A DNA stretch of 64,000 nucleotides, taken from assembly GCF_902459465.1 (NCBI RefSeq), contig NC_047073.1, positions 2,170,001 to 2,234,000 on the forward strand. Reading direction: 5' to 3'. The notes under the pieces were generated by a model. That model was not told where the DNA came from. It saw nothing but the letters and a program-made list of their open reading frames with translations, and did no database searches. This document shows, in pieces, positions 18,778 to 58,445 of the stretch; the stretch's first letter is position 1, and each line of letters opens with the position of its first letter. Position numbers and translations under genes: made by a program. Origin of the DNA: Asterias rubens. Lineage: Eukaryota.

Positions 18778-19767
18778 ATGGAGAAAATAACGAACGTTCT
18801 CATTTATCTTGAAAGATTGAAATTTAGAATCTGTCTTTCTTTACTTCTTGGACTGGTTTCACTGAACGGCTCCCAAGCCCATCTCGACCGTACATTTTTC
18901 GCAGCTAACCATCGGTCTCTCGAGAATGTCGATTTCTCAGTGAAGAATTTCAGCTCAGCTGTGCTCTGTGTGAGTTACTGTCACTCTGAACATGATTGCA
19001 ACTCAGTGAACTACCATCTGAAAGATCAACGATGTGAGCTGAATAATGCCACCAAAGACCAGTATCCTGATAACTTTGTCGTCGAGTATGGCAAGGTGTA
19101 CTATGACGATGATGTGAACACCCCTCACTCCTCCATGTTCGGTTGTAACGAGCTCCTTGAGACAGGTTTTGAGAGCGGTATCTACACTATCTTTCCCAGT
19201 GGGTTCCCGGAGGGTCTCAGGGTCTACTGTGACATGACAACCACTGGAGGAGGATGGATCGTCATCCAAAGGCGCCTGGATGGGAGCGTTGGCTTCTACC
19301 GGGACTGGGCGGACTACCGGGCAGGTTTTGGCAACTTGGCGGGTGAGTTTTGGCTTGGAAACGATAACTTACGCGCCTTGACCGAGTCGGAAGGGACATG
19401 GCAGTTCCGCGCCGAAATTGAAGATTGGAATGGCGCAAAACTTTGGTCAGAGTCTGGTGTTTTTCGAGTCCACGGTGAGAACTTTACGGTCCATAGCGAT
19501 ACAGAAACCGGTAGCCGTATTTTTTCTGTGCAGGATGGTATGTTATTCAGCACAAGGGACAGGGACAATGACGTCAATTCCAATGGACACTGCGCCCAAC
19601 TGCAAAAAGGAGGCTGGTGGTATAGCAATTGCTATAATGCTAACTTAAACGGCGTGTATTATAATGGAGCAAGGCAAGCTGCAGATGGAATAACACTGCA
19701 CTTGGGGAACCGTGTTAATTCAGACACAATGAAAACATGTAGCATGAAAATTCGCCGTGTAGCGTAA
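18778..19767 (+). CDS. Intronless fibrinogen-related protein (FReD) with N-terminal PAN/Apple domain, 329 aa
   Basis: Hydrophobic leader ICLSLLLGLVSLNGSQA; PAN-like CVSYCHSEHDCNSVNY..RCELNN; fibrinogen-C hallmarks YCDMTTTGGGWIVIQRRLDGSVGFYRDW, GFGNLAGEFWLGND, FSTRDRDND and GGWWYSNCYNANLNG. Confidence 0.93.
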   Translation: MEKITNVLIYLERLKFRICLSLLLGLVSLNGSQAHLDRTFFAANHRSLENVDFSVKNFSSAVLCVSYCHSEHDCNSVNYHLKDQRCELNNATKDQYPDNFVVEYGKVYYDDDVNTPHSSMFGCNELLETGFESGIYTIFPSGFPEGLRVYCDMTTTGGGWIVIQRRLDGSVGFYRDWADYRAGFGNLAGEFWLGNDNLRALTESEGTWQFRAEIEDWNGAKLWSESGVFRVHGENFTVHSDTETGSRIFSVQDGMLFSTRDRDNDVNSNGHCAQLQKGGWWYSNCYNANLNGVYYNGARQAADGITLHLGNRVNSDTMKTCSMKIRRVA

Positions 19768-26200: not shown

Positions 26201-29200
26201 GCCTACTGTATCTTTGTCTTGAGGCTTCAAAACATTCCTCTTACGATTGTGTTTTGTTGTAATAGGATTTACAGACCTGTCCGTCGAGGGAACGTGGGAG
26301 TGGATCGACTGCACCGGTCTCTTCAACCAATCTCTGTGGGCTCCAAACCAGCCCAACAACGGCATTGAAGATTGCGGTGCGTACCAAGCGGTCCCGCAGA
26401 AACTGGCGGACTATCAGTGCAGCCGAGAATATAAATTCATATGCAAAATATCTGCCAAAGGTAAAAAGGCAAACCTAATGGTTATTATAGAGTATAATAA
26501 TAGTGACTTATTATATATAGCGCTCATATCCGTCACTTAGTGACGCTCAAGCGCTTCAACATTCCGTATTTTCCTGCAAGGTAGGCAAATAACAATTTCT
26601 TTGATTTCGGCTTATGTGGTTTTACGTTTGACTTGTGGGATCAACTCCTTACTAAATAGCACCAAGTATTATGGTTTGCAATGTGCTATGCTGTGGCGCA
26701 ATATGCAGCCAATAAAACCAGGGACACCAAGGCGAACCTCTCCTCTTTACGATAATTGCACTTGGTTATTTTAATTGCTTCACATACATAACACACGGGA
26801 CCAATGGCTTCGAAGGACGAAGCATCATGGTTTAGTCTCTTGCTTAAGGACATTAGTGTCACGACTGGGACTCGAACCCACACTCTGCTGATCAGACACG
26901 CCAGAGCTTGAGTCCTGTGCTCTTAAGCTAGGCCATGACATGCAAGCCAATTTAAACTGTGGCTACATCAGCTCCATAGTGTATCGTGTAGAATTGGAAC
27001 AAGTAAAATACCATAGGCCTAGCCCTTTGGCAGCGTCACAGCTATAGCTAAAAAATAATGCTTTAAACATGTCTTGCTTAGCCAAAAAATGGGCAGGCCA
27101 AAAATCACATATAGTGCACACGACATAGTATTTGGGCTGGTAACCATATTCTGTGAAGAATTATGTTGTGCTTAATAGCTACTTTGTGTGCTTAAGAAGA
27201 TCTATGAAATTGGTCGCAAAGCTCAAAACACAAACAGTTTCTTTTGTCAAGGTTGCAAAACATCTCCTTTGGTAAGTCTACTGCCATCTACCGCCACAAA
27301 AAGCCTCAACACTGACTTTTTACCGATCTTTGCAGGATTTTCAGATGATGATACCAACGCAAGAAATGTCGCCGCAACGAAAGTGAATGACACCATAGCT
27401 CACGTGACGTGGGACGTTTCGCAGTACAACTGTGACGTCATTGGTTACAGAGTTTACTATGAACATTATGGCAACTCACAAACAAATGGTGAGATTTGTT
27501 TCAAAGCGTTCACAAATCCTTCGAAGGTGCATGTATAAGTATTAATATTTAATAAACAATGGACTTTAAGAGATAATGTATGAAAGACAATGTGAACCAT
27601 GGCATCACCGTTTGCTTGTTTGTTTAGGTAATGTTCCCGTCACAACTCTGCAAACTCCCACAATGGGATACGAATGCCAAACTGGCAACAACAGCCAATC
27701 TCTCTAACGTTTAACGTCTATCATTATGAATTGCACAAATCGAGAAATAAATACTTGTAATGTATGTTTGGCTATATTTGAAGTATGATACATACGTCCT
27801 TAACAAAGCACTTGTAAAACTACCAGTTTACAAGATTCTGTTGCGCAGTGTGCAGCCGATCAGACCAGGAACACCGGGTGATCCCTTTCTCTTTCCGATA
27901 AGTGCACTGTGTTCTTTAACGTGCGTTACACAACAGACGGGACCAACGGCTTTACGTCCCATCCGGAGAACGAAATGTGGAGGTTTTGTGTCAGGCACTT
28001 CTAGCTTCTTCTAGACAGGTAAACCCTCGCACGTTGTCAATCCCACTGAGAGTAGTGCACGGGGTTATTTTACGTGCGTTTTAACACACGGGACCAACGG
28101 CTTTATGTCCCACCGAAAGATTAAACGTTGAGGTTCTGTTAGGTACTGATCTAGTTTCTACCTCCGCACACATTGTCAATCCCACTGAGATTGTGTTTTC
28201 TTCTGTCCTCTATACTGATCAGGCTCCGTTCAGATAGACGGTGGAAACGCAACGGAGGTGTATCTACATCTCACGCCGGACATGTGGTGGCAGATATACG
28301 TAGCTGCAATGAAGACTGATCATCAGGAGTTAGACCTGGTAGGGCCATCATCAGTATGGTTAGGTAAGATCATTTTGGTTATTTTCCATGAAGTATAAAC
28401 AGGTATTAACTTTTTGTAGAAACGTAGGTGAATGACCAAATATTATCCAATATCGATGTACAAGGTAGACATTCACTGTACAAACCTATGGGAATGTCCA
28501 ATATACAATGTTGATGTACAAGGTAGACATTCACTGTACAAACATTTTTATGTAAATGTCCAATATCCATATCGATGTACAAGGTATAGTCATTCACTGT
28601 ACAAACGTACAGGAATGTCCAACATCCAATATCTAAAAAGCAACATCGTTATTCGCTGTACAAACATAATGTGATTGTCCAATACCCATTATAGATGTAC
28701 AGGGTAGACCCCATAAAAGATTCACTGTACTGCCATACATTTTGGTGGAGTTTTACTGAGCTTTGTAAAAGTTGTATGTGCTATATCTTTAAAGGTTCGT
28801 GCCCGGGTTGGCATGTGCCTGGACTTAACGGGTCGTGCTATTGGTTCCAGTCCGAAGAACGAGACATGTGGTATAGCCATCGGAACTGGTGCAAGAGCTA
28901 CGGCAGTGACTTGTTGATCATTGATAGCCCAGACGAGTTAGAGTACATCTTGAACCGGACAGAGTCAATCGCACCTAATGAGACTTGGTGGATTGGTAAG
29001 TGAACATTCAAAGGTAGCCCTAACTCATACACAGTCCCGGGGGATGATGCAGCAAGCGAGATTTCAGGCTCAACAACATTCCAAAAACCCAATTCACCTC
29101 GTTAAACCAGTCTAATCGTTTCAAACCAAGTTACTTTACGTGCAAGGTATTATTATAGCAGTTAGCTATGCTGTCCTAAACCAGGCTATTCTCCATGCAT

Positions 29201-32200
29201 CCGTTAAAGGTTACGCCACAAGTAAATGGTATACATGTAAACCCGGTTTTATAACCGGCTTGTCCTTTCAAACCAGTACTATAACCAGCTTATCGATTCA
29301 ACCCAGGTTACACCGATGCATCTGTCGAGGGTTCATGGAAGTGGGTAGATTGCGGCGACACCAACGACTGGCAAAGTACTCTCTGGGCACCAGGGGAACC
29401 AGCGGAACTCGATGATTGCGCAACGCTGCAAGGAAACACGGGTCATCTCAGAGGTCAAATCTGCGACCAGAGACTTCTGTTCATATGCAAAGTGTCTCCT
29501 AAAGGTAATTTCTTCACTAGATAAAACGGAACCATTTTAAAATAGAATTTAGAAGTTTTTTTTCTTGTAACGCAAACTTAACAAGTCTGTTTTCGTCCCA
29601 TTGTAAGATTTCACCAAGGAAGATACCAAGCCGAGTAACTTGACCGCCATTGCTGTGACGTCATTCAGTGTTGAAGTAACGTGGGATGTCTCTATGTTTG
29701 CCTGTGACGTCATTGGTTACAGGGTGTACTACAACTCAACGTCTGACCAGGACAACCTAGGTAGGATTTTTCTTGCTGAAACATTTTTGTCGGGTTGAGG
29801 TATGGGTTGCTTTTGTCGCCCAGAAGTCGATAGTGTGAGACACATGAAGAGATTTGATATGATTTGAAGAAATATTTGACTAAAATCTTCGTAACAAGTT
29901 ATTTTCTTATGAGTTGGTTTTTTCTTTCAACATATAACTAAAACTTCCTTCCTTGTCTTCTCTCCATTGGTTTCTTGTCTAGCACAGTGACTGAGTTCGC
30001 TTTTCTTGAAGTCCTTGGCGTTACAACCAGAATGAATACAACAAAGAGTTCTCAATATCCTCTTTGGTTTTATTTTTCTTTCAACAGACTGGGTGTTTAT
30101 TAACGGTGGAGATGTAAGCTCAGTGATCCTGTCAGGGTTAGCTAAAGAGACTGACTACTCCATTGGGGTCGCTGCTCTTACGACTGTGGAGGAACTCGAA
30201 CAAATCGGGCCCGTGGCCGTCACTACTCCATGGGGTAACTAAACCAAACCAAGAGATCAAAATGTCTTCATTTTAAAAAATCATTCACTTCAAAAGATAC
30301 GTCGACAAGACCAGTTACATAAAAACCATTTCTGATGACGGTTTCTGTAAGTACATTTAAAAATGGGGAATCGAACGAGACTTCGAGACTGTAAAAAAAA
30401 CTATAACTATTCCCTGTGTCCATTTGCTCATTTCTGATCTTGTCCCCAGGTTGCCCATCAGGTTTCGAGGAGGGCCCTGGCAATCGTTCTTGCTACTGGT
30501 TCCAGTCCGAAGAACGAGACATGTGGTATAGCCATCGGAACTGGTGCAAGAGCTACGGCAGTGATTTGTTGATCATTGATAGCCCAGACGAGTTAGAGTA
30601 CATCTTGAACCGGACAGAGTCAATCGCACCTAATGAGACTTGGTGGATTGGTAAGTGAACATTAAAGGGTAATCCTAACTCAGACACAGTCCCGGGGATG
30701 ATGCAAGCGAGATTTCAGGCTTAACAAAATTCCACAAACCCAATTCACCTCGTTCAACCAGTCTAATCGTTTCAAAACAAGTTACTTTACGCGCAAGGTA
30801 TTCTTATAGGAGTTAGCTATAGTCCTAAACCAGGCTATTCTCCATGCATCCGTTAAGGGTTACGCCACAAGTAAACGGTAACCTGGTAAACCAGGTTTTA
30901 TAACCGGCTTGTCCTTTCAAACCAGTACTATAACCGGCTTATCGTTTTAACCCAGGTTACACCGATGCATCTGTCGAGGGTTCATGGAAGTGGGTAGATT
31001 GTGATGACACCAATGACTGGCAAAGTACTCTCTGGGCACCAGGGGAACCAGCGGAACCCGATGATTGCGCAACGCTGCAAGGAAACACGGGTCATCTCAA
31101 AGGTCAAATCTGCGACCAGAGATTTCTGTTCATCTGCGAAGTGTCTCCCAAAGGTAATTCTTCACGAGATAAAACGGAAACACTTAAAATAGAATTCAGA
31201 AGCTTTTTTTGTTTTTTGTAACGCAAACTTAACAAGTCTATTTTTCGTCCCAATTTAAGATTTCACCAAGGAAGACACCAAGCCGAGTAACTTGACCGCC
31301 ATTGCTGTGACGTCATTCAGTGTTGAAGTAATGTGGGATGTCTCCATGTTTTCCTGTGACGTCATTGGCTACAGGGTGAACTACAACTCAACGTCTGACA
31401 AGGACAACCTAGGTAGGATTTTCCTTTCTGAAATATTTTTGTCGAGTTGAGGTCTGGGTTGCTTTTCCGTATTACAGAAGTCGATTGTCTGAGACACATG
31501 GAGAGACTTGATATTATTTGAAGAAATGTATAACTTAAATCTTTGTTACAAGTTATTTTCTTTCAAGAGACTGAGTGGTTTTGTTCTTCATATAACTAAA
31601 ACTTCCTTCCTTGTCTTATCTCCATTGGTTTCTTGGCTAGCACAGTGACTGAGTTCGCTTTTCTTGTAGTCCTTGGCGTTACAACCAGAATAAATACAAC
31701 AAAGAATTCTCAATATCCTCTTTGGTTTTATTTTTCTTTCAACAGACTGGGTGTTTATTAACGGTGGAGATGTAAGCTCAGTGGTCCTATCAGGGTTAGC
31801 TAAAGAGACTGACTACACCATCGGGGTCGCTGCTCTTACCACTGTGGAGGAACTCGAACAAATCGGACCCGTGGATATCACTACTCCATGGGGTAAACTA
31901 ACCAAACCACGAGATCAAAATGTCTTCATTTTAAAAAATCATTCACTTCAAAAGGTGCTTGTTGACATCTTACTTTACTTTAATTAGATACAATGTAAGG
32001 TCTTCATATTTGCTGGAGCAGGGTAGTCGAAACGTCGACAAGACCAATGTACTTAAGAACCAATTCTGATGACGGTTTGTGTTACTAAATTTGTTACCTT
32101 TAAAAATTGTTCAATCGAACGAAACGTTGAGACTGTATAACTATAACTATTCCCTGTGTCCATATTTGCTAATTCCTGTCCTTGTTCCCAGGTTGCCCAT

Positions 32201-35200
32201 CAGGTTTCGAGGAGGGCCCCGGTGATCACTCTTGCTACTTTTTTTATAATGGTACCGACACGTGGGCCTCAGCAAGGGGACGATGCCGTGGGATCGAGGA
32301 TGGAGATATTGTCATCGTCGACGACGAGGATGAGTTGAAGTACCTGGTTAGGAGGATGGAAGAGGTCAATCGAGGTCAAATGTGGTGGATAGGTAGGTCG
32401 AGTGTGTATTTTTGCAGTGTCTGATAGCTACGGCGATAATCAAAACAGGTTTCCTCCACTGCCGGTTATTACGGTGTGTCGGTAGAGGGCGTCTGGAGTT
32501 GGGTGGATTGCCAACCGACAGCTGATTGGCAGAGGCCCCTCTGGCCAGATGACGAGCACATGACCAAACTGTGGTTATTTGCAATGTCCGATAGCTTTGA
32601 CGATAACAAGAGTTGTTTCCATTGCAGGTTATTACGATGTGTCGGTAGAGGGCGTCTGGAGATGGTTGGATTGCCAACCGACAGCTGATTGGCAGAAACC
32701 CCTCTGGCCAGGTGAAGAGCCCATGGTGGGTACCGGGGACTGTGGGTACCTCGTCGGTGTACAAGGGGACGGCGAGGCGGAGATCAGACCAGCGGTTTGT
32801 GACGACAGGAAGTATTTCATCTGTGAAGTCGTCGACAATAGTAAGAGAAATACGCAAAAATTGAATTGAACCGTAGACTGGTCCCCTGTCTTTACGGTGT
32901 TGGTTTTATAATTATGTAAACACATGTACGTCAGATTGAACTGCGTATCTCCAGAACCATGAGAGCCATGTATTTACGAGGTCAAAGGTGATTTTGGACT
33001 TTGGCTCGAGGCAGATCTCTAACGCAATTCACGAGCCTCGACGAGCCTTACAGTCGGAGTAAAAAAAAATATACATATTTTTAAAGAAAAACAACAAGAG
33101 GGTAAAATAATCTTAAAATTTGTTTGAAGTTACAAGCATAACGCATTTGTTTATAATTATGCAAAGTTAGATCAGTTTATGGAGAACCTTTATGCCAATC
33201 CTATTTCAACGCATCTGTATACACATCATATACACTGTAACATATCCAGATTGGAAAATATTAATACACAATCCTCACACATTCCTTGCATCATGGGATT
33301 TATACAATTAATTTCGGTTTTTACCCTTACACCGATGTGTGTAAGCACTGTGTACTCAGTACTTACCCGAGCTCTGTGAAAACAAAAACTAAAGGCTATT
33401 ATTACTGCGGTGTGACTCGAACCCACTATCTTTGTAATTCTAGAGCAGTGCACTGCTCTATTTGAACACTGCAGTGTCTTACCAACTAGACAATGTTATA
33501 CAATAGTTGTTAAGATTATTCGCCATCGTTTGAAATGAAGCACCAAAACTAACAAACAACGTTATATATTTCAGGAGTTTTCCCAACTGATGCAAACGCT
33601 CGAAATGTCGCAGCCATTGAACTGACACCGGATAGCTTTCTGGTCACGTGGGACACTTCTCCTGACAACTGTGACGTCATTGGTTACACCGTGTATTACC
33701 AAAAGGAGTCGCCATCAGCAATGGAGGGTAAACAACAGATCAAGGCTCAGATAATGTTTGAACTATCATTAGTCAGAAAACAACCGATAGACCTTCTCAC
33801 TTGGTGTATCTCAACATATGCACAAAACAACAAACCTGTGAAAGTTTGAGCTCAATTGGTCGTCGAAGTTGCGAGAAAATAATGAAAGAAAAAACTTGTC
33901 ACACGAAGTTGTGTGCGTTTAGATGGTTGATTTCGAGACCTCAAATTATAAATCTGAGGTCTCGAAATCAAATTCGTGGGAAATTACTTCTTTCTCGACA
34001 ACTATGTCACTTCAGAGGGAGCCGTTTCTCACAATGTGTTATACCAACAACCTCTCCCCATTACTCATCACCAAGTAAGGTTTTATGCTAATAATTATTT
34101 TGAGTAATTACCAATAGTGTCCACTGCCTTTAAACTTACACGGTTTGAAGATTATGATGGTAGAAAGCTTCCCTTCAAATATTAAATGATGAGGTGCTGT
34201 GGTTTTTGAGACCTAGACCCTTATCTCATTTTAAAGATAGTATTTCCAACAATGTCAGTACTACCCTCTTACGATGCCTACACGACGTTAAAGAACTACT
34301 TCAACTTTTCAGGTGCGTTTGTGGACACAATCAAACTCTCATAAACACAGGATGAAGACATAGCTTTTTCGTTTTAACTTTTAAAAAGGAATTTCGCATT
34401 CGACAAACGGTGGTTTGGAGTATTTTGCCATTGTATGTTTTGAAATCGTCTTCTAAGCTTCATTTAATTTTGCAAGAACAACATTTGTTAAGGTTCCAAT
34501 TTAGTTTCTTTCATTGATTAATTTTAATGAGCATAATACTCGTTCACTACAACTACGCGTTTGACACACTGACATTTCTTTTACATTTTGTTTCTAGAAT
34601 TTATCACGGTAAATGGCGGCAATATCAGTAGAGTTGAAGTTGCGGTTCCGATGGTACTCGTTCACTACAACTACGCGTTTGACACACTGACATTTCTTTT
34701 ACATTTTGTTTCTAGAATTTCTCATGGTAAATGGCGGCAATATCAGTAGAGTTGAGGTAACAGTTCCGATGGTACAGCAGGAGAGCACTGCTTACTCAGT
34801 CACCGTAGCTGCACTGAACACCGTGACGGTCTTAGAGCGCGTTGGCCCGGCCAGTGTCACCCTGAATCCCGGTAAGGCACCTCCCATTGATCATGTTATA
34901 GGCACTGGACACCTTTGGTAATTGTCAAAGACCAGTATTCTCACTTGGTGTATCCCAACATATGCATACAAAACAAGCCTCTGAAATTTGTGACTTTATT
35001 GGTCATCGAAGTTGCAAGAGAATAAAGAAAGAAAAAACACCCTTGTTGCACAAATTTAGATGCCTGTAAAAAGGCCCTTTCGTATCCCCTCTGCTCATCA
35101 GTAAGTGAAGTGTTCAATAAAGCCATAATAAATATTTCGGAAAAAGGGATTACTTGTATTAAGTCACGTTGTTGGTAACATTAATAACTTGTCATATATT

Positions 35201-38200
35201 GTTCTCATCATTTATTGCAGTATTGTTTCTCATAGTACAAGTGTGCAATACACAAATTTGAATTGCATTCGAGACTTCAGCTGAGGTCTCGAATTCAGGC
35301 ATCTGAAAGCACACAACTTGTGCGACAAGGGTGCTTTTTTTCCATTTTATGCATATGTTGAGATACACCAAGTGAGAAGACTGGTCTTTGGCAATAGGAG
35401 ACTTTCCAACGCTAGGTGGCAGCAGACATACCGGGTAAGTTTCCATTGTTTACGTAGTTCTGAACATGCGCATAATTCTGAGAACAATGGATTTACCCGG
35501 TAAGTCTGCTGCCCTCTATCGTCCCAGAAAGTCTCCCATTACCAAAGGTGTCCATGCCTTTAAAGAGCAACGAACGTGCTGACACGCGTGTTTATTCCGA
35601 AAGAGATAATCTCAAAGTTCTCCACATCTTCCAAACTTCGACAGTACTAGTACTTCATAAGTTTTTATGACGATAGCTTGCAATCTTGTCTTTTTTTTGT
35701 ATTACACAGGAGAGCCCGTCAGTACTCCAGCTTATAGCTCCACCGATGCTGTACTCTTTATTGTCTTCGATCAGACAGTTGGATGGGTGAGTGATTGTTG
35801 TGCTTGTCTCGGTTTGTTTTAACAATAATACAAATAATATCGAAGTCTTATACAGTGCACGTATCTACCAAACAAGGTACTCAAGGCGCAATAGCGAAGT
35901 CTTATAGCGCACGTATCAACCAAACAAGGTACTCAAGGCGCCTAGTATATACAAACTTTCACAAAGATAGGTTATTGCAGTGATGGATTCTGAGACCCAA
36001 TTATTTAGCACCTTTACGAGGGTTTACAAGGTGCTACGGAGCATTCAACAACCACAGTCAGGAACACCGGGGCGAACCTCTTCTCTTTTCGATATAAAGT
36101 GCACTGGGTTTTTTACATGGTTGCACAACACACAGGACCAACAGTTTTACGTCCCATCCGAATGGCGAAGCAATATCTAAATATCTTGCTTAAGGACACA
36201 AGTGTCACGACTTGGGGATTCGAACCCTAACTCTGCTGATCAGAAACACCAGAGTTTGAATTCAGTCAGTGCTCTTTACTGCTCGGCTACGACACTTCAA
36301 ATACACATGTTTTGTATGGCACCGTGTATAAGATCATCCTGGTATAACTTATAATACTGATCACAATACGGGTTACAGGGCTTGAGATCCGCCAGGGTTG
36401 TTGTTTCTAAAATAAATATTGTTTTATTTTGCAGTTTACATCAATGATGCAAGTCCAGTTAGCAACAGGCATTGCGAATGTACTCAATCGATATACACCA
36501 AATCAACAAAGAGATACGTTTGCAGAGTTTGGGTAAATATCAACAGCGCCCTCACTGGGACCAAAGGAAGTCCAATCACTTTCTGGTAATGGTCAATGGC
36601 GTTTCGTACAGGCGTTTACATTTATATCCTCAGTGGCTAATGGGACAGATTTCATGACGACGTCACGATTTATCAGCTCCAAGGGTGGATTTCCTAAAGA
36701 ATTAAGACTAATCTTATCTCGAGTTAGGACGAGTTAATACTCGTCCTAACTTAAGACTAGCCATACGTTTTTACTATCTCTAGGACAAGTCCTAAGTTTG
36801 TTTGTGAAATCGACCCCAAGTCTCACTTTGATAACAGTGCTTTTTGTGATAAAGTAAACCACACTAACAAGCTTTTGTTGTTTAAACTTCCCGTGACTTT
36901 CAGACCCTCTGACGTCATCTTCATATCTATCTTCAATACCGGGAGTGATCTTCACATTGTGACGTGGGTACGAGATGTCACATCCTCTAAACCAGGGGTA
37001 CCCCTCGACCCCAACAAGGTCCTCAGCGCACTCTCGGCGGAGCAGACCTACTTTGAAGACTTCATGGGACCGACGTTTCAATACGCAGTGAGCCTCGTGC
37101 CAAGTCCTACGCCTACTACAACAGCGGCACCTACCGGCGGCGGCATGGACGAATGGCTGATCGCGGTGATTGCCGTGGGGGCGCTTCTTGTAGTGATAGT
37201 GCTAGGTTTGATTGTATTCAAATGGTGAGCAACAACAAATCGTGGTTTCAAGACCTTCGCAAGCAGCGCTCCGTATTGACCGCTACTTTGGGCAAGTCTA
37301 TTCTCGCTACCATTGGCAGCGCGTCGTATCGCCCGCTAGCTTTGGGCAAGTCTATTCTCGCTACCATGGGCAGCGCCTCGTATCGCCCGCTAGCTTTTGA
37401 CAAGTTTATTCTCGCTACCACGGGCAGCGCGCCGTATCGCCCGCTAGCTTTGGGCAAGTCTATTCCTTTTTCGATATCAAACAGAAAGTCTTCAAGCGAA
37501 ATCAAATTAAGAAGAAAAACGCCCCCTCTGTCGGGTTATCACGAGTATGAAATAGTGACATCTCGGACCAAGACTACAACTAATCAGGCGTGTTGAGCAA
37601 TTAGGAATAGTATGGTGCCATACAAATATAAAAACTATTTTATCATCAAAACTTTCTCAAAATTAGTCAATGCTTTCTCTAAAATTGTGACAAATAACAC
37701 AACATATGTTATTCAATCGGCAGAACAGGTTTAGTGGTAATAAAGACATCTACTCTACCAATACAAAGGTCGTGGGTTCGGATCCCACTCAAGTGATATG
37801 ACTGTGGATTTTTATCACTACTCGGGAAAGTACTGTGTATACAATGCTTCTTACACATCGGTGTAGGGTAAAAACAAATAATATTCATAGATCACGTTTG
37901 GTTTGCGGTAACACCATGTGTGTATCTGCTTGCCAGGTAGAGTTTGTTCTTAGAGAATTGCTTGCTACTACCGCGGAGTAGATTGTTCGGGTGTTTGGGA
38001 AACTTCTCAGTTCTGAAAAGAACTGTCCTGCTTATTTTAACTATTACCCGAGCGGATGGTATAGAAATAGGCTGGGACTACTACTTTAGCTTATTGGATC
38101 GTAATTAACTGTACTCACGCGGAGTCAGTTCTTGAATTTGTCTCAATGAAGCTAGTTCATTATATTCGTTGAAACGGCACGGTGCATATTACTACAAAAT

Positions 38201-39119
38201 AGTAGCCAACCCGCATGCTGCATACAGGTCTACAAACAAACTGATATAGGCCCAATTTAATTAAGCAGAAAAAACTGCTTGTGAAGTTTCTATGCTATAA
38301 GCAAACAACGGGTGGGGCACCAGTCACAAACAATATAAACTTAATAGACCTTTGGCAGGTATGCAGTTTCTGCTGAGCGATATTAGTTCCTTAATTACTA
38401 TTCTTTCATTCCATTTCAGTGGTTCAAAGCACAAAAAGACAGACAGACGGATAGATCTACACAGTAAGTGAACAATTAATGTTATGTAATAAACCTGGCG
38501 ATTTCCTAGGGCGCCCTCTGTTAAAAGATAATTTAAACTAAGCGATGTTGATTTGTCTTTTCTTTTTAGATGAATATGCTGGTGGCAGCGTCTATGAGAG
38601 ATTTACACCAACATCTTTCTCTTCCGATGGAACGTGGTAAGCGACAGTTATTGTTATTTTACAGGGTCTTGGTAATGACTCGGCAAGTTAATGGCAATAA
38701 AAACTTTCGTGGTAAGAAGTACATTGGATAGTATAATCCATCTTTGGAAACATTACACTTCGAAGCACTACATCAATGGGAAATATTCAAATATATACCG
38801 GGAGTAGTATAGACTGGTTTCAAGCCATTTCTAAGTAAGTTATGGTTTACCTTCATAACGGTGAAATAATGCGGATAAATGCAATTGACTACGTATTAGT
38901 CAATTACCGTACGTAGGTGCCCTTATTCGTCTTGAGCAAAGGCTATAGATCTGCAATCAATAACACACAGGTAGTGGGTATACCGGAGTAATATAGACTG
39001 GTTTCAAGCCGTTGACATGAAAATTGAGTTAATATGTGCTTCTTTTCTTTGCTTACAGGAATCCTGCATTCCAGCCCATGCAAGAAGTTGAAAGGGACAA
39101 CTCAATAACGTCCTTATAA
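23243..39119 (+). CDS. Type-I membrane receptor: signal-(C-type lectin-FN3)x4-SEA-like-TM-cytoplasmic tail, 1180 aa, 23 coding exons
   Basis: Exons 23243-23318 (signal MYLFVARVLTCMLVFCNGFSA), 23990-24178, 26266-26460, 27336-27488, 28223-28363, 28795-28995, 29307-29504, 29608-29760, 30088-30234, 30450-30650, 30956-31153, 31260-31412, 31746-31892, 32192-32392, 32628-32840, 33575-33727, 34716-34871, 35710-35786, 36435-36532, 36904-37224 (TM WLIAVIAVGALLVVIVLGLIVF), 38420-38463, 38570-38636, 39059-39119. Total 3543 nt in one open frame, all GT-AG. CTLD motifs CY..C..WWIG..W.DC..C; FN3 motifs VTWD..CDVIGY.VYY..V.VAA. The SEA-like call is tentative. Confidence 0.88.
26700..26938 (-). mobile_element. 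tRNA-derived SINE (family A); related copies at ~27850-28110 and ~36050-36292
   Basis: The reverse strand shows an A-box-like GTCATGGCCTAGCTTAAG and a B-box GGGTTCGAGTCCC, followed by a non-tRNA body shared between copies. Confidence 0.7.
28420..28720. repeat. Intronic minisatellite, ~5 copies of a ~60-bp unit
   Basis: GATGTACAAGGTAGACATTCACTGTACAAAC recurs in tandem. Confidence 0.8.
28836..32232 (+). repeat. Recent intragenic tandem duplication (unit A 28836-30490, unit B 30491-32232)
   Basis: Four exons and their introns are near-identical between the units, at an offset of 1655 bp at the start and 1742 bp at the end. Confidence 0.92.
35393..35543. mobile_element. ~150-bp palindromic MITE; second copy in opposite orientation at ~52105-52252
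   Basis: ATAGGAGACTTT..GGTGGCAGCAGAC..CCGGGTAA ... TTACCCGGTAAGTCTGCTGCC..AAAGTCTCCCAT inverted arms. Confidence 0.75.
37260..37462. repeat. 54-bp minisatellite (~3.5 copies) just inside the intron after the TM exon
   Basis: Unit GCTAGCTTTGGGCAAGTCTATTCTCGCTACCATGGGCAGCGCCTCGTATCGCCC. Confidence 0.9.
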
Positions 39120-47186: not shown

Positions 47187-50100
47187 ATGGAGACCTCTCG
47201 AAACGTCGACAAATTCAGCAAGATGGAGCGGTTCTTATCGGGGCTGTCGGACTTCGGCAAAAGGAGTCTCAACTTGAGCGTACTTGTGAACGATGAGCCT
47301 CTACAAAAGGCCTACTCTACCGCAATGGCTGATGGAGAGCTTCCAACCAACCGGGCAAGAGTCTTGATTCTAGGCGAGCCACGTGCTGGAAAGACCAGCT
47401 TGCTTAACCGTCTACTCGGGAGAGAGTTTGACCGCAACGAGCAGCCGACACACGGCATTGAGACGCGTATGTGTCACGTCACCAATGTGGACAAGCAATG
47501 GAACGAGGCAGGTAGTGCTAAGGTAGATGATATCCAAGAATGTGCCGCAGCTATTGCTGTGCTTGAGGAAGCTTCATCGGAGGAACCCCACCAAAAACAA
47601 GACGCCACAAAGAGTTTCTTCAAGGCATCTCCATCGTCAGTTGATAACTTCTTCTCATCAGCATCCGTCGAGACTGGATTACTCAACATTTGCAAACAGC
47701 TTTCAATTTTTTTCGAGATCTCTGTGGTGATGCTGGTTTCTCTCTTTTTTGGCCTGAGTCAACTTGGTTACGCGACATTTACGTTGGGCTGCATAGGTTT
47801 AATGACTCTGGTGCTTGACTACAACGTCGCATTCAGGTGTGCCACTTGTGTCTCAGTGTCGTTCGCCCTCTTCGAAGCCATGGCGAGAGGAAATGAACAT
47901 CAGAAAGAGCTTTCTTGTACAGGGAACGACGATTACGTTGCACTGGACTGGTTTATCTTACAGAATATCGTATTGAATGTGTTTAACACGGCCATGTTTG
48001 GCACGGCGTGCGGTCTTGGATTTCGGACAGGTGTAGCTGTCGCCTTCTCAGCGAGTGTGCCGCCGTGGGAGGATAGCTCCGGAAACACGGCATGGCAAAG
48101 TGTCTCTTTTTGGAACGCTGCGTCCATCTGCCTGGTGCTGCTTGCTGGTAGCTTATCGGGAGGGGTAACCTACAAGTATTGCACTGTGAACGACCGGTTG
48201 CACAGAAGACGAACCATTGCCTCGTGTTTTTTTATGACTCTTTTGTTCACAGTCTACGTTAACGTTGAGTGTGGTAGCAGACTACTTCTATATATCTTCA
48301 TGAATGCGTTTGTGATGACAGTAGGGATGGCTTGGGGGTTTATGTTCGGACACAGAGCTGTGATGAAGTATGGTTTTGAGGCTCGATATATCACTAAGAA
48401 AACAATTGGCCTAATTTTCGGCTTTTACCTTGTGCGCATGTGTGGATGGACCCTTAGACTACCGGGTACCTCTTTAAAATCGCTAGCCTTTTATACTTTC
48501 TCAGTAATCGTATTCCCATTGTTTGACCTCTACACAGCCTTCAGGATATGGAACACAAAATCTACTTTCCCTGTGAAGACGATTCGTAACCAAATGAAGG
48601 CTTTGATCCAGAGACAACCTCTTCTCGAGACCAAACTGAGTCTGTGGGACTTCGCAGGTGATACTTTGTACCACAATACCCACCATGTGTTTATGCCAGA
48701 CAGAGCCATGTACGTCATTGTCTTTAACCTAGAGGCAGCTGTATCTGACGAAGAGGTACAACTTCAGAAACTTCTCTTCTGGCTTCACTCTGTCTGTGCT
48801 CACGCCCGGCACCCAGACGCTGTAGTCATGATTGTCGGTACCCACAAAACTAGCGTTCCAGAGGCAGAAAGAAAATGCTTCACTGATAATCTTCACAATC
48901 TAATCACGGCCAAATTCTGCGACCGGCTTGTTCTCAACCCGGCCGACGATAAACCTTTATTTCTGGTGGAGAATTCGGATGCCTTTGATCAAGACTTTCG
49001 ACAGCTGAGAGCAGAGATATTTCGGCGTGTCGAGACTGCAGAGTACGCCCAGGAGAAATATCCCATCAAGTATTTGCATTTTTACCGTGAGATCCAAAAC
49101 CGTCGGAAGCTTGCCCAGGGGCCGGATTGTGACAAGAACGTAGCCAGCCTACAACAGATCCAAGACCTGGCAAATCTCACATGCAACATAGAGGGCGAGG
49201 AGCAGCTGCAAAAAATGTTGAGATACTTCAATGAGGCAGGAGAGATCATCTACAGAGCGGAAGACGTAATACTAAGGTAGCATGTTGTACTTGATCCTCA
49301 GTTTCTGGTAGACGTCATGAAGAAGCTAGTTGACATCCCAAGAGCCTATCATCGCTCACATCGCTACGCCATTGAATGGAGAAACTACGAGAATACCGGA
49401 ATTATTTCCGAGGAGTTGCTGCACCACATCTACTCCGATATGCCTCATCTTATTCCATTGCTAATCAATCTTCTTCAAGCATTTGATCTCATTGGCTCAT
49501 TGGAACCCACTCAAGGCCCAAGCTGCTCACATCCTTCATTTTTGGTGCCTGCCATGTTGCCTCCTTTTGAGTGTGAAGGGTCGAAGTTTTGGGAATCACA
49601 GGACAAGGAGGAGGTCTTCTACTTTGACTTTGGCTTCTTCGATCCCACAACTATCTACTACCGTCTATTGACAAGATGCTTAGCACACGCCAACAGAGAC
49701 AACGACGAGCCTCACTCCAAACCGCTCATCTTTGCAGATCGTTCTCGGTTCTACATTGGAACTAGTTTAATCTTCAAGCTCCAGTTGGAGAAGAGATCCT
49801 CCCAACAACAGCTTCTTTCCGTCGCCATTTTAACTTTTGACTCTGAGAACTCCAGGCAAGAATTATTAGGGTTTTTTGTAGAGGCTGTGAGGAACATCAC
49901 TGCTCGGGATTATTTACATCTTAACTTTACATTTGGACCCCGGTGTCCTTTCTGTGAAACACCTCGTCCATCGAATGAACTGACGGACGTCAAGGAACAC
50001 GACGAGGCAATCCATGTCTTGATAATGGCGGGAAACGATAAGTCATTTCCCACAAGGTCATCGACCGTAATGTTCTGTGGAGTAAGGCGACACAGAATGA

Positions 50101-50330
50101 AACTGAGCAAATCAAGGGTAAGTGCAAACTTTAAAATTAACCTAAGAAGAGCTCACTCCGCGGTAGTTTATCAACGCTCTCTTTTAAGCTAAAGTAGTAG
50201 TCCCGGTTAAAGTTCTACCTTACCGCTCAGATAGTTAAAAAGCATGCGGCTCTTTCCAGAACTAAGAAGTCTCCCAGATTCCGAAAATCTACTCCGTGGT
50301 AGAAGAATATAAAGCAGACAGTACTACCTG

Positions 50331-50361
<31 letters not shown>

Positions 50362-51331
50362 CATGGTGTTACCGCAAACATCAACATGCAATGCCTCAAA
50401 TCTTATTTAAATTTAAAACATTGAGACCTATACCACTGATAGAACCTATTACTTTTCAAACTGACAGGGGTAAGTTTTATGATTCACCACTTTAGGAGAA
50501 CCTTCCAAGTACCTCCCATCCACCACAGAGGGTAGTCTTTGGCCCGGAGACGCTCATCACCAAGATACCACCAGACCTGTTTGACAAGGTGTGCTGTTTC
50601 CTGAACACTAGGGGGCAGAGGAGCTGGAAGACACTGGCAGGTGAGGACACAGTCGTGGCTTGTGTAAAATTTCTCGTGGAAACATTCAAATGAAAATCGT
50701 TGGTTTTAAGAACAATTCATTTTCCCCCCGATCATCACATCCCCTGGCCGAGCCGTCTAGTTCACATGACCCGAACTCTTGTACTGTCGGTGTGGACTCG
50801 ATTCCCGGACACCTGTGAAGGAAGTCCGTTTTGCTCTACCAACTAGGCAATTGATAGAGGATAAAAACCCATTCCTACATCCTTACGGACTGTGAATGGG
50901 GTATCACCCTGTTCCAGGCCCAGGGGTAGGTGGCAACGCGCCCCTGGTGACAGCTGATTTGGGTTGACGTCTAAAACAGGTTAAAAGTGAAGCCCTTGTT
51001 TTGAAGTCGTCCGGCCTAGTAAGGTTGGGCGATATCTCATAGAAAATAAATCACAACAAATCACTGTCCTGATTCTAAACAGAGACTCTGCATGAACACA
51101 GAGAGTCTCCTTGATAGTATCCATATTTCTGTTTCCTCAGGTGAATTGGGTAAAGATGTGGATTTCGTAGCTGCTTTAGACAGTGAAGGGGTGACCAACC
51201 CCAGTGAGCATCTCCTCAAGGAATGGTCGATGGAAGGAGGCGTCACAGTGGCTGATCTACTTGAGGTTCTAGAAAGACCTGGTCTGGAGAGGAAGGACAT
51301 CATCCAAGAAGTCAAAGCTCAAATGTCTTGA
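47187..51331 (+). CDS. ROCO-family protein: Roc GTPase with inserted multi-pass TM block, COR domain, C-terminal death domain (~1088 codons; one in-frame TAG at 49278-49280)
   Basis: Exon from 47177 (ATG 47187) to 50117, then 50496-50640 and 51141-51331, GT-AG with consistent phases. P-loop LILGEPRAGKTSLL, switch I PTHGIET, G3 LSLWDFAGD, YVIVFNL, WLHSV, G4 VMIVGTHK; COR motifs LRYFNEAGEIIY and VVLDPQFLVDVMKKL; death domain LFDKVCCFLN..SWKTLAGELG..PSEHLLKEW..TVADLLEVLER..RKDII. Coding status is uncertain because of the TAG. Confidence 0.82.
50742..51060 (+). mobile_element. Probable tRNA-derived SINE in the death-domain intron
   Basis: A-box-like TGGCCGAGCCGTCTAG and B-box-like GACTCGATTCC, then a ~250-bp body ending in an A-rich tail. 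Confidence 0.5.
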
Positions 51332-51680
51332 TGACTTCGTAGCTGCTTTAGACAGTGAACGGGTGCCCAACCCCAGTGAGAATCTCCTCAAGGAATGGTC
51401 GATGGAAGGAGGCGTCACAGTGGCTGATCTACTTGAGGTTCTACAAAAACCTTGTCTATAGAGAGGAAGGACATCATCCAAGAAGTCAAAGCTCAAATGT
51501 CTTGATGACTTCGTAGCTGCTTCAGACAGTGAAGGGTGACCAACCCCAGTGAGAATCTCCTCAAGGAATGGTCGATGGAAGAAGATGTCACAGAGTGGCT
51601 GATCTACTTGAGGTTCTAGACAGACCTGGTCTGGAGAGGAAGGACATCATCCAAGAAGTCAAAGCTCAAATGTCTTGATG
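51162..51680 (+). repeat. Triplication (~173-bp unit) of the 3' part of the death-domain exon
   Basis: Units start at 51162, 51334 and 51508; the first is coding, and copies 2-3 lie after the stop and carry indels or stops. Confidence 0.92.
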
Positions 51681-54600
51681 ATTTGTTTCTTCCTTTCTTG
51701 AGAAAAGACTACGTTTATTTGACGCCGTTATGCTCGAGGATTATTTCAAAAATGGAAAGAAAGCCTGAGTTCAATATATCATTAGAACGCCGTTATGAAC
51801 ACCTGCCCCTTTTGAGGATTAATTCAATAAGCATTGCAGCGTAGTCTCCTATACTCAAGACAGGAACTGCAGCGCACAAAACCCCGCACTGTGTAAAAAG
51901 CAAAATGCTTCCCGGATCAAGAGACTAAAAAACGACCTTTCGGAAAAGTACGGACTTATCCGGATTTGGTGTGTTTGACATCTCCGTTCAGAACATTGTA
52001 CCTTTCAACAACAACATTTATTTCCATTTCACATAATAATGTGTGTCGGTATCATACAAAATGACGATTTACATTACAACAATCCCCGGTGAGCGTTTGC
52101 TTGAATATGAGACTTTCTGGGACGATAGGTGGCAGCAGACTTACCGGGTAAAGTCATTGTTCTCATAATTATGCGCATGTTTAGAACTACGTAAACAATG
52201 GAAGTTTACCAGCTAAGTCTGCTGCCACCTAGCGTTGGAAAATCTCCCATTGGAATACCATACAGGACAAGACAGACAAAAACATTTACAGATATACGGA
52301 CAGACAGACAAAAGGGGTAAAAAACACTGTCAGAAATAATTGCAAGAATTTACACTCTTAAAACATGAGATGCCCCATCCCTGTTTTAACACGGGTGCCA
52401 GGGGTTACCGCAGCGTGCAGTACAATGTGATAACGTGAACACTTGATTTAGATTGTTGAAGTCATCTTTTTTCTTAGCTAATTAATAATCTTACGAGAGG
52501 CTGTAGTTTGACCAAAAGAAGATTAAACAAATTACGTTTAAACTTTTGCCGTTTAATTATGAAGATATTATACTGTGAAAGATATTTTTTGGGGGTACAC
52601 AATCATAATGTTGAAAGTGTTTTCTAATTGGATATTTCGAGTCCATGAGTCGTACTTCCAGGGGGGGGGGGGGGGGCGGGATGCATGTCAAACGGGTTTT
52701 GCATGAAGATAGAACTTAAAGGGTTTCACTTGTTTTTATGGCAAACTAACTTAATTACCCCTTTGTCCCTGCACAGCCCGAGTTTGCTGAAAAGACATTC
52801 TTTGGCTTTTCAATATTCTTGCAGTGACTATAATTATAGTTCAAATTTCAAAACAGCCAAGGCTTATCATTAACGTGCAATTGTAATATTTGTCCTTTTC
52901 AATATAAGCGTTCAGAAGTCATGAGTCCCCAGGGTACATTAAGTGCCTCTCGTTAACGGCTGACGGGAATTCGTTTATGATTATTAATTTTATAATGCTA
53001 AAATGAATACATCAATAGCTTTTCAAAGCTTTTTATCTGGAGCAATGCTCTTACTGTTAATTGCAACGGATTCAAGGAATTAGTTTTCGGCAGTTTCATC
53101 ATGATGAAAGACAATTTCAATTTTTGGTTTGTTACAAAATGAGCATTTTGTGCTAAAGAGCTAAATTATTTCATCATCATTAGTGTCTACATGTTACAAG
53201 TCAACTGTGAAGGGGGAATTAATAATGATCTGCAAACGATTGCTAGACTCTGCCTTTACTTTTACTTTAGTTTTATTTTGATGTTACTTTGTTTTCTCCA
53301 AACACAAGCTACATGTATACAGTGAGGTTTTCTTATCCCGCATAGAGCATCGCTTTAGGCGGCTGGGCATTCCAGTGATTAAAGGGTCTGGGTGGATTTC
53401 ACAAAGAGTTAGAGGCAGTGGACACTTTTTGGTATTTACTCAAAATAATTATTAGCATAAAACCTAACTTGGTGACGAGTAATGGGGAGAGATTGATGGT
53501 ATAAAACATTGTGAGAAACGGCTCCCTCTGAAGTGCCATAGTTTTCGAGAGAGAAGTAATGTTCCACGGATTTGATTTCGAGACCTCAGATTTAGAATTT
53601 CAGGTCTCGAAATCAAGCATCTAAATGCACACAACTTCGTGTGGCAAGGTTGTTTTTTCTTTCATTGTTATCTCGCAACTTAGACGACCGATTGAGCTCA
53701 AATTTTCACAGGTTTGTTATTTAATGCATTTGTCGAGATACAGCAAGTGTGAAGACTAGTCTTTAACAATTACCAATAGTGTCCACTGTCTTTAAGACTA
53801 GTCTTATCTCGAGTTAGGACGAGTTATTCGTCTTAACTTAGGACTAGCCATACGTTTCGTATAACTGTTAGGACTAATCCTAAGTCAGGACTTGTCCTAA
53901 CTCCTTGTGAAATCGACCCCTGGACACTTTTGTATAGGACACAAAACACAGTGTCCAAAAGATTTACATTAAACTGGACTGGCACTGGACACTATTGGTA
54001 ATTGTCAAAGACTATTCACTTGGTGTATCTCAAAATTATACACAACATAACAAATCTGTGAAAATTTAGACTGGTCATCGAGGTTGTAAGAGAATAATGA
54101 ATGAAAAAACCTTTGGTGCCCAAATTTGTGTGCTTTCAAATGCCTAAAAAAAGGTTTCAGGCACGAAGTCATGTATTACTCGAGTGCGAAATTACCCCTT
54201 TCTCAAGTTAATGGTTACTTCAGAGGGAGCCGTTTTTTACACTGTTTTATACGATCAACAGCTCTCCATTGATCGTAATACCAAGTACGTTTTTATGCTA
54301 ACAATTATTTTTACCAATAGTGCCCAGTGCCTTTAAAGGAACTCATTAAAAACCTTTCGTCATACAAATACGTCGCGCCACTGCTTTGGTGATGGTGGGC
54401 CATGAAGTGCAACATTGCCATTTCTGGGAATTTATTGAGAATAAAAGTCTACTTAAAATGCTAATATAATTCAGACGCCATTTATTGCATCCTTTTTTAT
54501 TGATTTGCTTTTGACGGAGACACACAGACAACGACATTGCTCATGTTGCACTTTAAAGGGACACGCTGCCTTGGATTGGACAAGTTGGTCTATGAATAGT

Positions 54601-57723: not shown

Positions 57724-58445
57724 TTATATTTCGTAGTAGATACAGCCTTCCCTTCCTTGGTAGTTTTTCCCCCCGTCCACATCAAACCGAGTTGCGTTAT
57801 TAAGTTCACATAAGTCTCCACCAGCCACGTTAAACGAACGGCATCCAGGTGTTTCGTTACACGCCATGCAGCAATGCAACGGTCGCTCTACGATCATGAC
57901 GTCAAGGGTGTGGTTCACGAGGCAACGCCCGTGAAATACAGAGTAGCAGCTGTTGGCCGAGTTGGAGCAAAGGGGAGGGACCGGACGCTCACATATGACA
58001 TACCTGAGTTCATTGCAATTCAAATCGTTAAACTTGTAGATGGCGCTGACCACTGCGCAATCTTCATGTTCATGACGATGTCCATCATACCAGTCAGTGC
58101 GGTACGGCGAATCACCATCCCCGGTGCAAACCCACACCCCTTCCACCGCCTTGTCGGTGCAGTCAATCCAGAATCCTTGATCCGGTTTATCGGGGAACGA
58201 ACCCTGGAACTGGTCCCAGACGAAATCATGTTCCGGTTTGGAGTTGATAGAGGGAATGTTCCCGCCATAATCCCGGCAAATCTCCTTGGCCTCGTACACA
58301 TTGTATTTCGTCCCCAATTGGTTCATGTAGCACGAGTCGCCCCACTCACGCCAGCCGCCAGGACATCGTCCGTACGCGGGGCGCTGCTCTCTGCTCCCAT
58401 CAAGTACGGAATGGTCATCAGTAAGGAAATGAGAAAACCGAACAT
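57724..58445 (-). CDS. Intronless secreted C-type lectin + C-terminal PAN/Apple domain (~240 aa) with a 1-nt frameshift (pseudogene allele or assembly indel)
   Basis: Signal MFGFLISLLMTIPYLMGAES from ATG 58445 is out of frame with RCPGGWREWGDSCYMNQ..C..FWIDCTD..EGVWVC..EDC..FNDLNC..YVICERP (CTLD) and CLVNH..CCMACNETPGCRSFN..LCELNNAT (PAN). Adding one base to the G4 run at 58378-58381 restores a single ORF. Confidence 0.85.

Follow-up and report, generated by a model that had tools for sequence, protein, structure and literature searches.

ROCO GTPases such as LRRK2 and DAPK1 have been studied intensively, and how the Roc switch is controlled and how it couples to membranes are still open questions. 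LRRK1, LRRK2 and the Chlorobium tepidum Roco protein, for which Roc-COR structures have been solved, have a short β2–β3 hairpin in Roc, N-terminal leucine-rich repeats (LRRs) and a kinase or other effector, and they reach membranes only via partners such as Rabs. Human DAPK1, which is linked to cell-death signalling, combines Roc, COR and a C-terminal death domain with a kinase, ankyrin repeats and a calmodulin-binding segment; it is soluble and associated with the cytoskeleton. Here we describe a gene at positions 47187–51331 of a 64,000-nucleotide stretch of the Asterias rubens genome (NC_047073.1, 2,170,001–2,234,000; hereafter the window). Like DAPK1, its product has Roc, COR and a C-terminal death domain, but it lacks the kinase and ankyrin repeats and its Roc fold is split by a predicted membrane domain of about ten helices. 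This architecture is a conserved, undescribed variant of the ROCO family, and the window gene is a sea-star member of an uncharacterised, bilaterian-wide ROCO clade. The window copy carries a single CAG-to-TAG nonsense change in COR-A.

The first-pass annotation of this locus, made from the letters alone, had described ROCO proteins as characteristically soluble. This is not absolute, as the C-terminal part of Ectocarpus ROCOs resembles transmembrane proteins (PMC4104024). ROCOs with death or CARD domains are found in Trichoplax (PMC4104024), and 'AP-GTPase' systems have been discussed by Aravind's group (PMC8195603). A full-text literature search, which included locus names, found no paper describing a membrane domain inside Roc, in agreement with the annotation, which knew of no described protein with this architecture. 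FeoB, a bacterial Fe2+ transporter whose G domain is N-terminal, is similar in that it combines a small G domain with a polytopic membrane domain in one chain, so that nucleotide state can couple to the membrane. In FeoB, however, the G domain is complete before the membrane part, i.e. the two are arranged in series; FeoB is not a ROCO protein and has neither COR nor a death domain. Pfam FeoB_N matched the P-loop only weakly, below threshold.

The gene model was obtained by mapping the intact Asterias amurensis ortholog (P0001; 1089 aa, 95% identical) onto the window by tblastn and reading the junctions; this gave three exons, all of them, like every feature given below unless stated otherwise, on the forward (+) strand. 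Exon 1 (47187–50117; 2931 nt, 977 codons) aligns without gaps to aa 1–977 of the ortholog at 95% identity and ends at a GT donor at 50118. It encodes the N-terminal region, the N-half of Roc, a linker, the membrane domain, the C-half of Roc, COR-A and COR-B, and contains the one TAG. Exon 2 (50496–50640; AG acceptor at 50494–50495, GT donor at 50641) matches aa 979–1028 of the ortholog at 100%, and the death domain starts within it at ~50586. Exon 3 (51141–51331; AG acceptor at 51139–51140), also located by tblastn, encodes the remainder of the death domain and ends with a TGA stop at 51329–51331. The splice sites of the window gene are all canonical. Roc, the membrane domain and COR therefore share a single 2931-nt exon, as the annotation had proposed, and the death domain is on two further exons; what had been missed is the TAG at 49278–49280, which interrupts COR-A. 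The open reading frame 47187–49280 consequently spans 697 aa, and the frame stays the same past the TAG to 50192.

Pfam Roc (PF08477) matches the protein with 73.7 bits (cut-off 27) in two stretches, aa 54–103 and aa 457–553. The N-half of Roc (47337–47501, aa 51–105; delimited by the Pfam Roc/Arf stretch and motif alignment) comprises β1, the G1 P-loop GEPRAGKTS (aa 63–71, nt 47373–47399), α1, switch I with the G2 residue Thr88, and β2, with strands at aa 56–63 and 97–101 in the model. The C-half (48621–49046, aa 479–620; Pfam and motifs) comprises β3, G3 (WDFAGD, with DFAG at 48648–48659), G4 (T-H-K-T at 48840–48851, GTHK being aa 551–554) and G5 (VENS). The annotation had placed G1, G3 and G4 at exactly these positions. 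About 370 residues separate β2 (IETRMCHV) from β3 (KLSLWDFAG), i.e. G1 and switch I from G3–G5. In the family alignment G1 (GxxxxGKT), the G2 Thr, G3 (DFAG) and G5 (ENS) are conserved, with G1 and G3 invariant. G4 reads T-H-R/K/L-D in hemichordates, amphioxus and the brittle star; this T-H-x-D type, seen in the ancestral-looking members of the family, is that of LRRK1, LRRK2 and Roco. The Asp is lost in most sea-star copies, and in the window it is replaced by Thr.

A full-length AlphaFold model was made for the ortholog P0001 with a 28-sequence alignment [predicted local distance difference test (pLDDT) 76.4, predicted template modelling score (pTM) 0.63]. Foldseek matched this model to LRRK1 (E 2e-15), LRRK2 and the C. 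tepidum Roco protein, which are its best structural matches. VIA-align superimposes LRRK1/2 and C. tepidum Roco with Z ~22–25 over 360–490 aligned residues across Roc, COR-A and COR-B; Roc-COR of LRRK1/2 covers model residues 49–975 (Z ~24). Complete chains of Rab, Arl, Rag and the LRRK2 ROC domain [164–186 residues, root-mean-square deviation (r.m.s.d.) 2.4–2.8 Å] align over the model range 53–620; Rab33 aligns with 170 of its 173 residues (r.m.s.d. 2.7 Å) and the LRRK2 ROC domain with 186 of 194 (r.m.s.d. 2.7 Å). Because whole small-GTPase chains align across 53 to ~620, the two halves of Roc are predicted to come together as a single canonical G domain, at the cytosolic side of the membrane. 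To the question raised by the annotation, whether the two halves fold together in AlphaFold, the model thus answers that one G domain is formed.

COR follows Roc directly on the C-terminal side, the combination that defines a ROCO protein. COR-A (49047–49571, aa 621–795) was delimited by Pfam and by alignment with LRRK1/2 and C. tepidum Roco and is cut by the TAG in the window; Pfam COR-A scores 44.9 bits (cut-off 35.3) at aa 641–791 of the ortholog and 20.2 bits on the piece of the window past the stop. A COR-B-like region (49572–50117, aa 796–977) is defined by the structural alignment with LRRK1/LRRK2, which reaches model residue ~975; Pfam COR-B matched in two of 28 family members. The death domain (Pfam PF00531) scores 26.5 bits (cut-off 22.6) at aa 960–1089 of the ortholog and 19.5 bits on exon 3 of the window alone, is matched at E < 0.01 in 13 of the 28 members, and has six helices in the model (aa 1004–1088). 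Neither the ortholog nor the pieces from the window gave a Pfam match to a kinase, ankyrin repeats or LRRs, and the same is true of all 28 family members. The domain order Roc, COR and death, and the lack of LRR, ankyrin and kinase domains, are therefore as first annotated.

The sequence between the two halves of Roc has three parts. A linker (47502–47681, aa 106–165) begins with a conserved acidic helix (AKxDDIxECA, ~aa 113–130), in which D114 and D115 are invariant in the family alignments, and continues as a low-confidence, probably disordered tether (pLDDT < 50 at aa 133–168). The putative polytopic membrane domain (47682–48551, aa 166–455) has about ten hydrophobic helices as judged from hydropathy, loop charge, a model of the insert alone and the alignment. 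A basic helix past the last membrane span (48552–48620, aa 456–478; model helix 463–475; family mean of 6.0 Lys plus Arg in aa 452–480) runs into β3. The multi-pass hydrophobic block within Roc that the annotation had pointed out is present both in the window sequence and in the family mean, where aa 168–452 contain nine to ten such segments. The ~10 conserved segments have 19-residue Kyte–Doolittle peaks of 1.4–2.5, and they persist in the family-mean hydropathy despite ~19% identity between phyla. With ten segments and both ends assumed to be cytosolic, the predicted cytosolic loops carry on average 9.5 Lys plus Arg and 2.4 Asp plus Glu, and the predicted outer loops 5.8 and 7.5 respectively. 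These charges follow the positive-inside rule and fit an even number of spans, which places both halves of Roc on the cytosolic side. With several spans of ~20 hydrophobic residues joined by positive-inside loops, the protein has, by sequence, the characteristics of a polytopic membrane protein.

Within the domain R217 does not vary from bivalves to sea stars, nor do G278 and G384 among the deuterostome members; R280 and R389, placed at the predicted cytosolic face, are near-invariant across phyla. Three glycine-zipper-like motifs (GxxxGxGxRTG, GxxxGxxxGR and KKxxGxxxG..GW) are conserved. An AlphaFold model of the insert alone, computed from the window's own sequence and 25 aligned sequences, is a confidently predicted eleven-helix bundle (pLDDT 78.7, pTM 0.77). 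In the models a short structured helix connects the membrane domain to β3 and switch II, and the floppy tether connects it to β2.

No relative of this domain was recognized. Foldseek with the insert model gave no significant fold match in the PDB (best E 0.18), and the best matches were similarly poor among the AFDB clusters (E 0.09, TM ≤ 0.26), the Swiss-Prot models (E 0.14) and the ESM Atlas (TM ≤ 0.37); a feature search of the ESM Atlas with the insert was uninformative (best score 0.53). A profile of the family's inserts had no match among PDB sequences at E ≤ 10, and Pfam matched no family in 25 inserts; sub-threshold matches of single members to DUF6142, DUF4231 and FtsX were set aside as noise. 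Alignment of the two halves of the domain with hhalign (probability 0.5%) detected no internal repeat. In a wide VIA-align search, three ALMT anion channels (7w6k, 8hiw and 7voj; Z 9.5, 8.6 and 7.4) were in the top five rows and were the top three membrane-protein matches. An ALMT-like fold was not adopted: only 87–123 of 329 residues are aligned, the scores are under the VIA-align noise bar for helical bundles (Z < 13), and this partial likeness to ALMT/QUAC channels comes without Foldseek, hidden Markov model or Pfam support, so that it is a weak lead only. There is thus no significant sequence or fold match to a known transporter or channel family. The searches with the insert alone that the annotation had proposed recovered no known family, and its 'channel- or transporter-like sensor' must be regarded as speculation. 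The domain, being without detectable relatives, may have a new fold.

An exhaustive search of 1.84 billion representative proteins with the insert-only profile retrieved 18 proteins, most of ~950–1130 aa with the insert at ~aa 100–470; six are shorter, among them isoforms of reduced length, truncated models and fragments. The named members come from sea stars (Asterias, Patiria and Acanthaster), the crinoid Anneissia, the brittle star Amphiura, the acorn worms Ptychodera and Glandiceps, and amphioxus, and all are annotated 'uncharacterized' or 'death domain-containing'. Patiria has at least seven copies, six of them on one scaffold, and Ptychodera has many copies on one scaffold, which suggests clustered expansion in both. 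A search with the C-half of Roc plus COR (Roc-C + COR) added Mytilus species, Pinctada, Mactra, Antedon and Branchiostoma floridae, whose G1-to-G3 spacing and hydrophobic segments match those of the rest of the family. Bivalve and deuterostome inserts are homologous: hhalign aligns them colinearly over 131 columns (probability 94.6%, E 7e-8). No member turned up in sea urchin, sea cucumber or vertebrates; since the profile search also missed the bivalves, absence from these groups is unproven. Altogether, more than 30 homologues, drawn from four phyla, have the insert in frame, and the annotation's proposed check, whether homologues keep it in frame, came out positive for echinoderms, hemichordates, amphioxus and bivalves. 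A gene-prediction artefact, in which an intron or transposon is read as coding sequence, was rejected, as the insert keeps its frame, its colinearity and its motifs across phyla.

A tree was calculated from Roc-C + COR only, the insert being excluded (44 rows, quick IQ-TREE search; P0007, P0010 and other truncated models omitted). All 33 membrane-bearing proteins form one clade, with a support of 97 in the Shimodaira–Hasegawa-like approximate likelihood ratio test. The nearest outgroups (clam, amphioxus and a metagenome) carry an insert of 100–140 aa at the same β2–β3 site, which is acidic, of low complexity and not hydrophobic; this sister group consists of P0052, P0057, P0059, P0064, P0016 and P0053, several with a death domain. 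Invertebrate Roc-COR proteins with death or CARD domains, i.e. the Trichoplax ROCOs and the clam and amphioxus proteins P0052, P0057, P0059 and P0064, fall within the same ROCO subfamily as the window protein in the tree; many of them have a death domain, and the clam and amphioxus relatives share its insertion site, whereas the ten-helix domain is confined to the clade of the window protein. In a canonical LRR-Roc protein the hairpin is short, as is usual. The β2–β3 hairpin is an insertion hot spot in this ROCO subfamily.

Judged from these sequence comparisons, the membrane domain arose once and is found only in the Roc-COR context. The exhaustive profile search retrieved only Roc-bearing proteins and no stand-alone membrane domain, and a search limited to stand-alone sizes gave two fragments (from contigs of 1.6 kb and 0.95 kb), both still with the Roc P-loop; P0027 is a fragment or frameshifted model. 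The annotation had read the single large exon as a sign that a ready-made membrane module was inserted into the switch region. This idea was set aside as unsupported. No such module was found in either search, the nearest relatives have a non-membrane insert at this site, and the exon argument does not hold: outside sea stars, exon structure was read in Mytilus, where Roc, the membrane domain and COR are likewise on one large exon. Since Mytilus shares it, the 2.9-kb exon is ancestral to the family and gives no evidence of module insertion.

We consider it likely that the intact protein is a membrane-integral ROCO switch, with split Roc, COR and death domain, that would couple membrane state to death-domain signalling, and that the window holds a null copy of it. 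The predicted membrane domain sits in the β2–β3 (interswitch) hairpin, between switch I and switch II, and the protein would dimerise through COR while residing in the membrane, like the Roco proteins of known structure. Nucleotide state would then be coupled to a membrane-borne one (lipid, ion, ligand or damage), in one direction or the other. Such coupling is suggested by the structured helix that ties the membrane domain to β3 and switch II, the tie to β2 being only the floppy tether. The death domain may recruit death-fold adaptors for innate-immune or cell-death signalling and could serve as output or as input. A role in immunity or cell death is probable in view of the paralogue expansions on single scaffolds, the relaxed selection described below and the lectin and fibrinogen genes nearby. 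We propose only tentatively that the family represents a new class of membrane-integral GTPase switch, in which a change in a ten-helix domain of new fold passes via the interswitch hairpin to switch II, or in which nucleotide gates the membrane domain.

Several points weigh against a membrane-coupled switch and have to be set beside its rivals. Membrane insertion, GTP binding and death-domain signalling are all predictions from sequence and models. The Asp of G4 that reads guanine is Thr in the window copy and Ala or Glu in Patiria, so nucleotide specificity or binding may be altered in sea stars. Sequencing error or heterozygosity may account for the TAG, a point taken up below. The membrane domain evolves fastest, with 49% identity among sea-star paralogues versus 84–90% for Roc, and it could be a mere anchor, because the β2 tether is of low confidence and non-membrane relatives tolerate a disordered loop at this site. 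If so, it would only hold a Roc-COR-death adaptor at a particular membrane, with no sensing, transport or allosteric link. This is a possible account but clearly the less probable one. The hairpin does tolerate passive inserts, the acidic stretch of the relatives being probably disordered, the membrane domain is the least conserved part of the protein, and no transporter or channel fold was matched; ten helices, however, far exceed what anchoring needs, the connection to β3 is short and structured, R217, G278 and G384 are invariant as described, and the glycine-zipper-like motifs and R280 and R389 are conserved across phyla at the predicted cytosolic face. By analogy with immune effectors that disrupt membranes, the flow of the signal could also be reversed: the death domain would receive it, Roc-COR would switch, and the helices would open or assemble as a pore or channel, so that the cell is killed or depolarised. 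The glycine-zipper-like motifs, the leading place of ALMT channels among the membrane-protein matches, the lack of obvious sensor repeats and the immune-like expansion of the family would suit such an effector. We think it unlikely, as the ALMT matches cover a minor part of the model below the noise bar of the tool, Foldseek found nothing in the PDB, AFDB or Atlas, and there is no sequence similarity to any channel. Least probable by far is a soluble or peripheral all-helical domain within the G domain, comparable to the helical domain of Gα. Membrane insertion is predicted from sequence and four helices are moderately hydrophobic (best 19-residue Kyte–Doolittle 0.9–1.2), but six segments reach 1.5–2.5 and stay hydrophobic in the family mean at 19% identity, the loop charges obey the positive-inside rule, and the weak structural neighbours are all polytopic membrane proteins.

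The membrane-coupled switch would apply to the intact protein, and the state of the window copy has to be judged separately. Its TAG (49278–49280) is codon 698 of ~1088 and lies in COR-A between AEDVILR and HVVLDPQFLVD, where the A. amurensis ortholog has CAG (Gln); the reading frame across the exons is therefore interrupted. It is the sole defect of the gene, as the start codon, splice sites and death domain are intact, and exon 1 differs from that of A. amurensis by 83 nucleotides and 48 amino acids with no indel or frameshift over 2931 nt. The ratio of non-synonymous to synonymous substitution rates (dN/dS) against A. amurensis is 0.42 by the Nei–Gojobori method (NG86) and 0.51 by maximum likelihood (ML), with dS ~0.05; it is alike upstream and downstream of the TAG (downstream 0.46–0.68). 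On the tree the branch of the window copy (0.021) is not longer than that of the ortholog (0.029). Because dN/dS is alike on both sides, no frameshift is present and the branch is not longer, the TAG is recent, and the window copy is a young pseudogene or a segregating null allele unless the TAG is an error. The last-but-one exon junction is 840 nt downstream of the TAG, so the transcript is likely to be a target of nonsense-mediated decay, which would make the window copy a young pseudogene or null allele, and we regard it as probably a null allele, not functional. There is some prospect, though the smaller one, that the copy is functional and that the TAG reflects a mistake in assembly or sequencing, marks one of two alleles at a heterozygous site, or is read through. 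This would accord with a lone defect in 3.3 kb of coding sequence, with dN/dS below 1 past the stop and with the branch not being accelerated; however, the TAG base is unambiguous in the window, the protein search gave no product of the locus although proteins encoded in the window normally appear in it, and a dN/dS of 0.4–0.5 is already relaxed.

If the proposed switch is correct, a membrane signal would be linked to death-domain assembly within one polypeptide, a kind of receptor or effector undescribed in animal innate immunity. The family would provide a natural ROCO clade, from bivalves to amphioxus, with a putative polytopic domain built into the G domain beside both switch regions, and hence a system for studying how a membrane domain may be coupled directly to a Ras-like switch. 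For invertebrate immunity, it further supplies a candidate multi-pass signalling protein with a death domain. The window copy itself matters less, since it is probably a null allele.

Three other genes were noted in the window. A single-exon open reading frame at 18778–19767 (+ strand, 329 aa) encodes a PAN domain together with the C-terminal domain of fibrinogen (Pfam 190.7 bits) and is of a fibrinogen-related, lectin-like, immune type. On the opposite strand, 57724–58326 (–) encodes 200 aa, in which a C-type lectin domain (64.5 bits) precedes a PAN-like domain. Upstream of the ROCO gene, a large gene at ~23243–39119 has repeated C-type lectin and FN3 domains; its synteny is kept in A. amurensis, where a gene with Lectin_C and fn3 repeats is called at 1–1430 of the ortholog's locus (L001).

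Some details of gene structure differ between the two Asterias species. At the junction of exons 1 and 2 the A. amurensis model has an extra residue, Thr978, relative to the window; the donor sequences are identical in both, and the difference is probably a detail of the A. amurensis gene model. Intron 1 (50118–50495) is 378 bp long in the window and contains an (AC)16 microsatellite at 50331–50363; in A. amurensis it is ~4 kb (L001, 12935–17005), so that there is either a 3.7-kb insertion in that species or a deletion in the window. Tandem Repeats Finder reports a repeat at 51164–51681 (+) with a period of 172 bp, 3.0 copies and 93% matches. The coding end of the death-domain exon makes up the first copy; the other two, both degenerate and frameshifted, lie in the 3′ untranslated region and show up as echoes in tblastn. 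A. amurensis also has at least one echo of the 172-bp unit (L001, 17848–17991).

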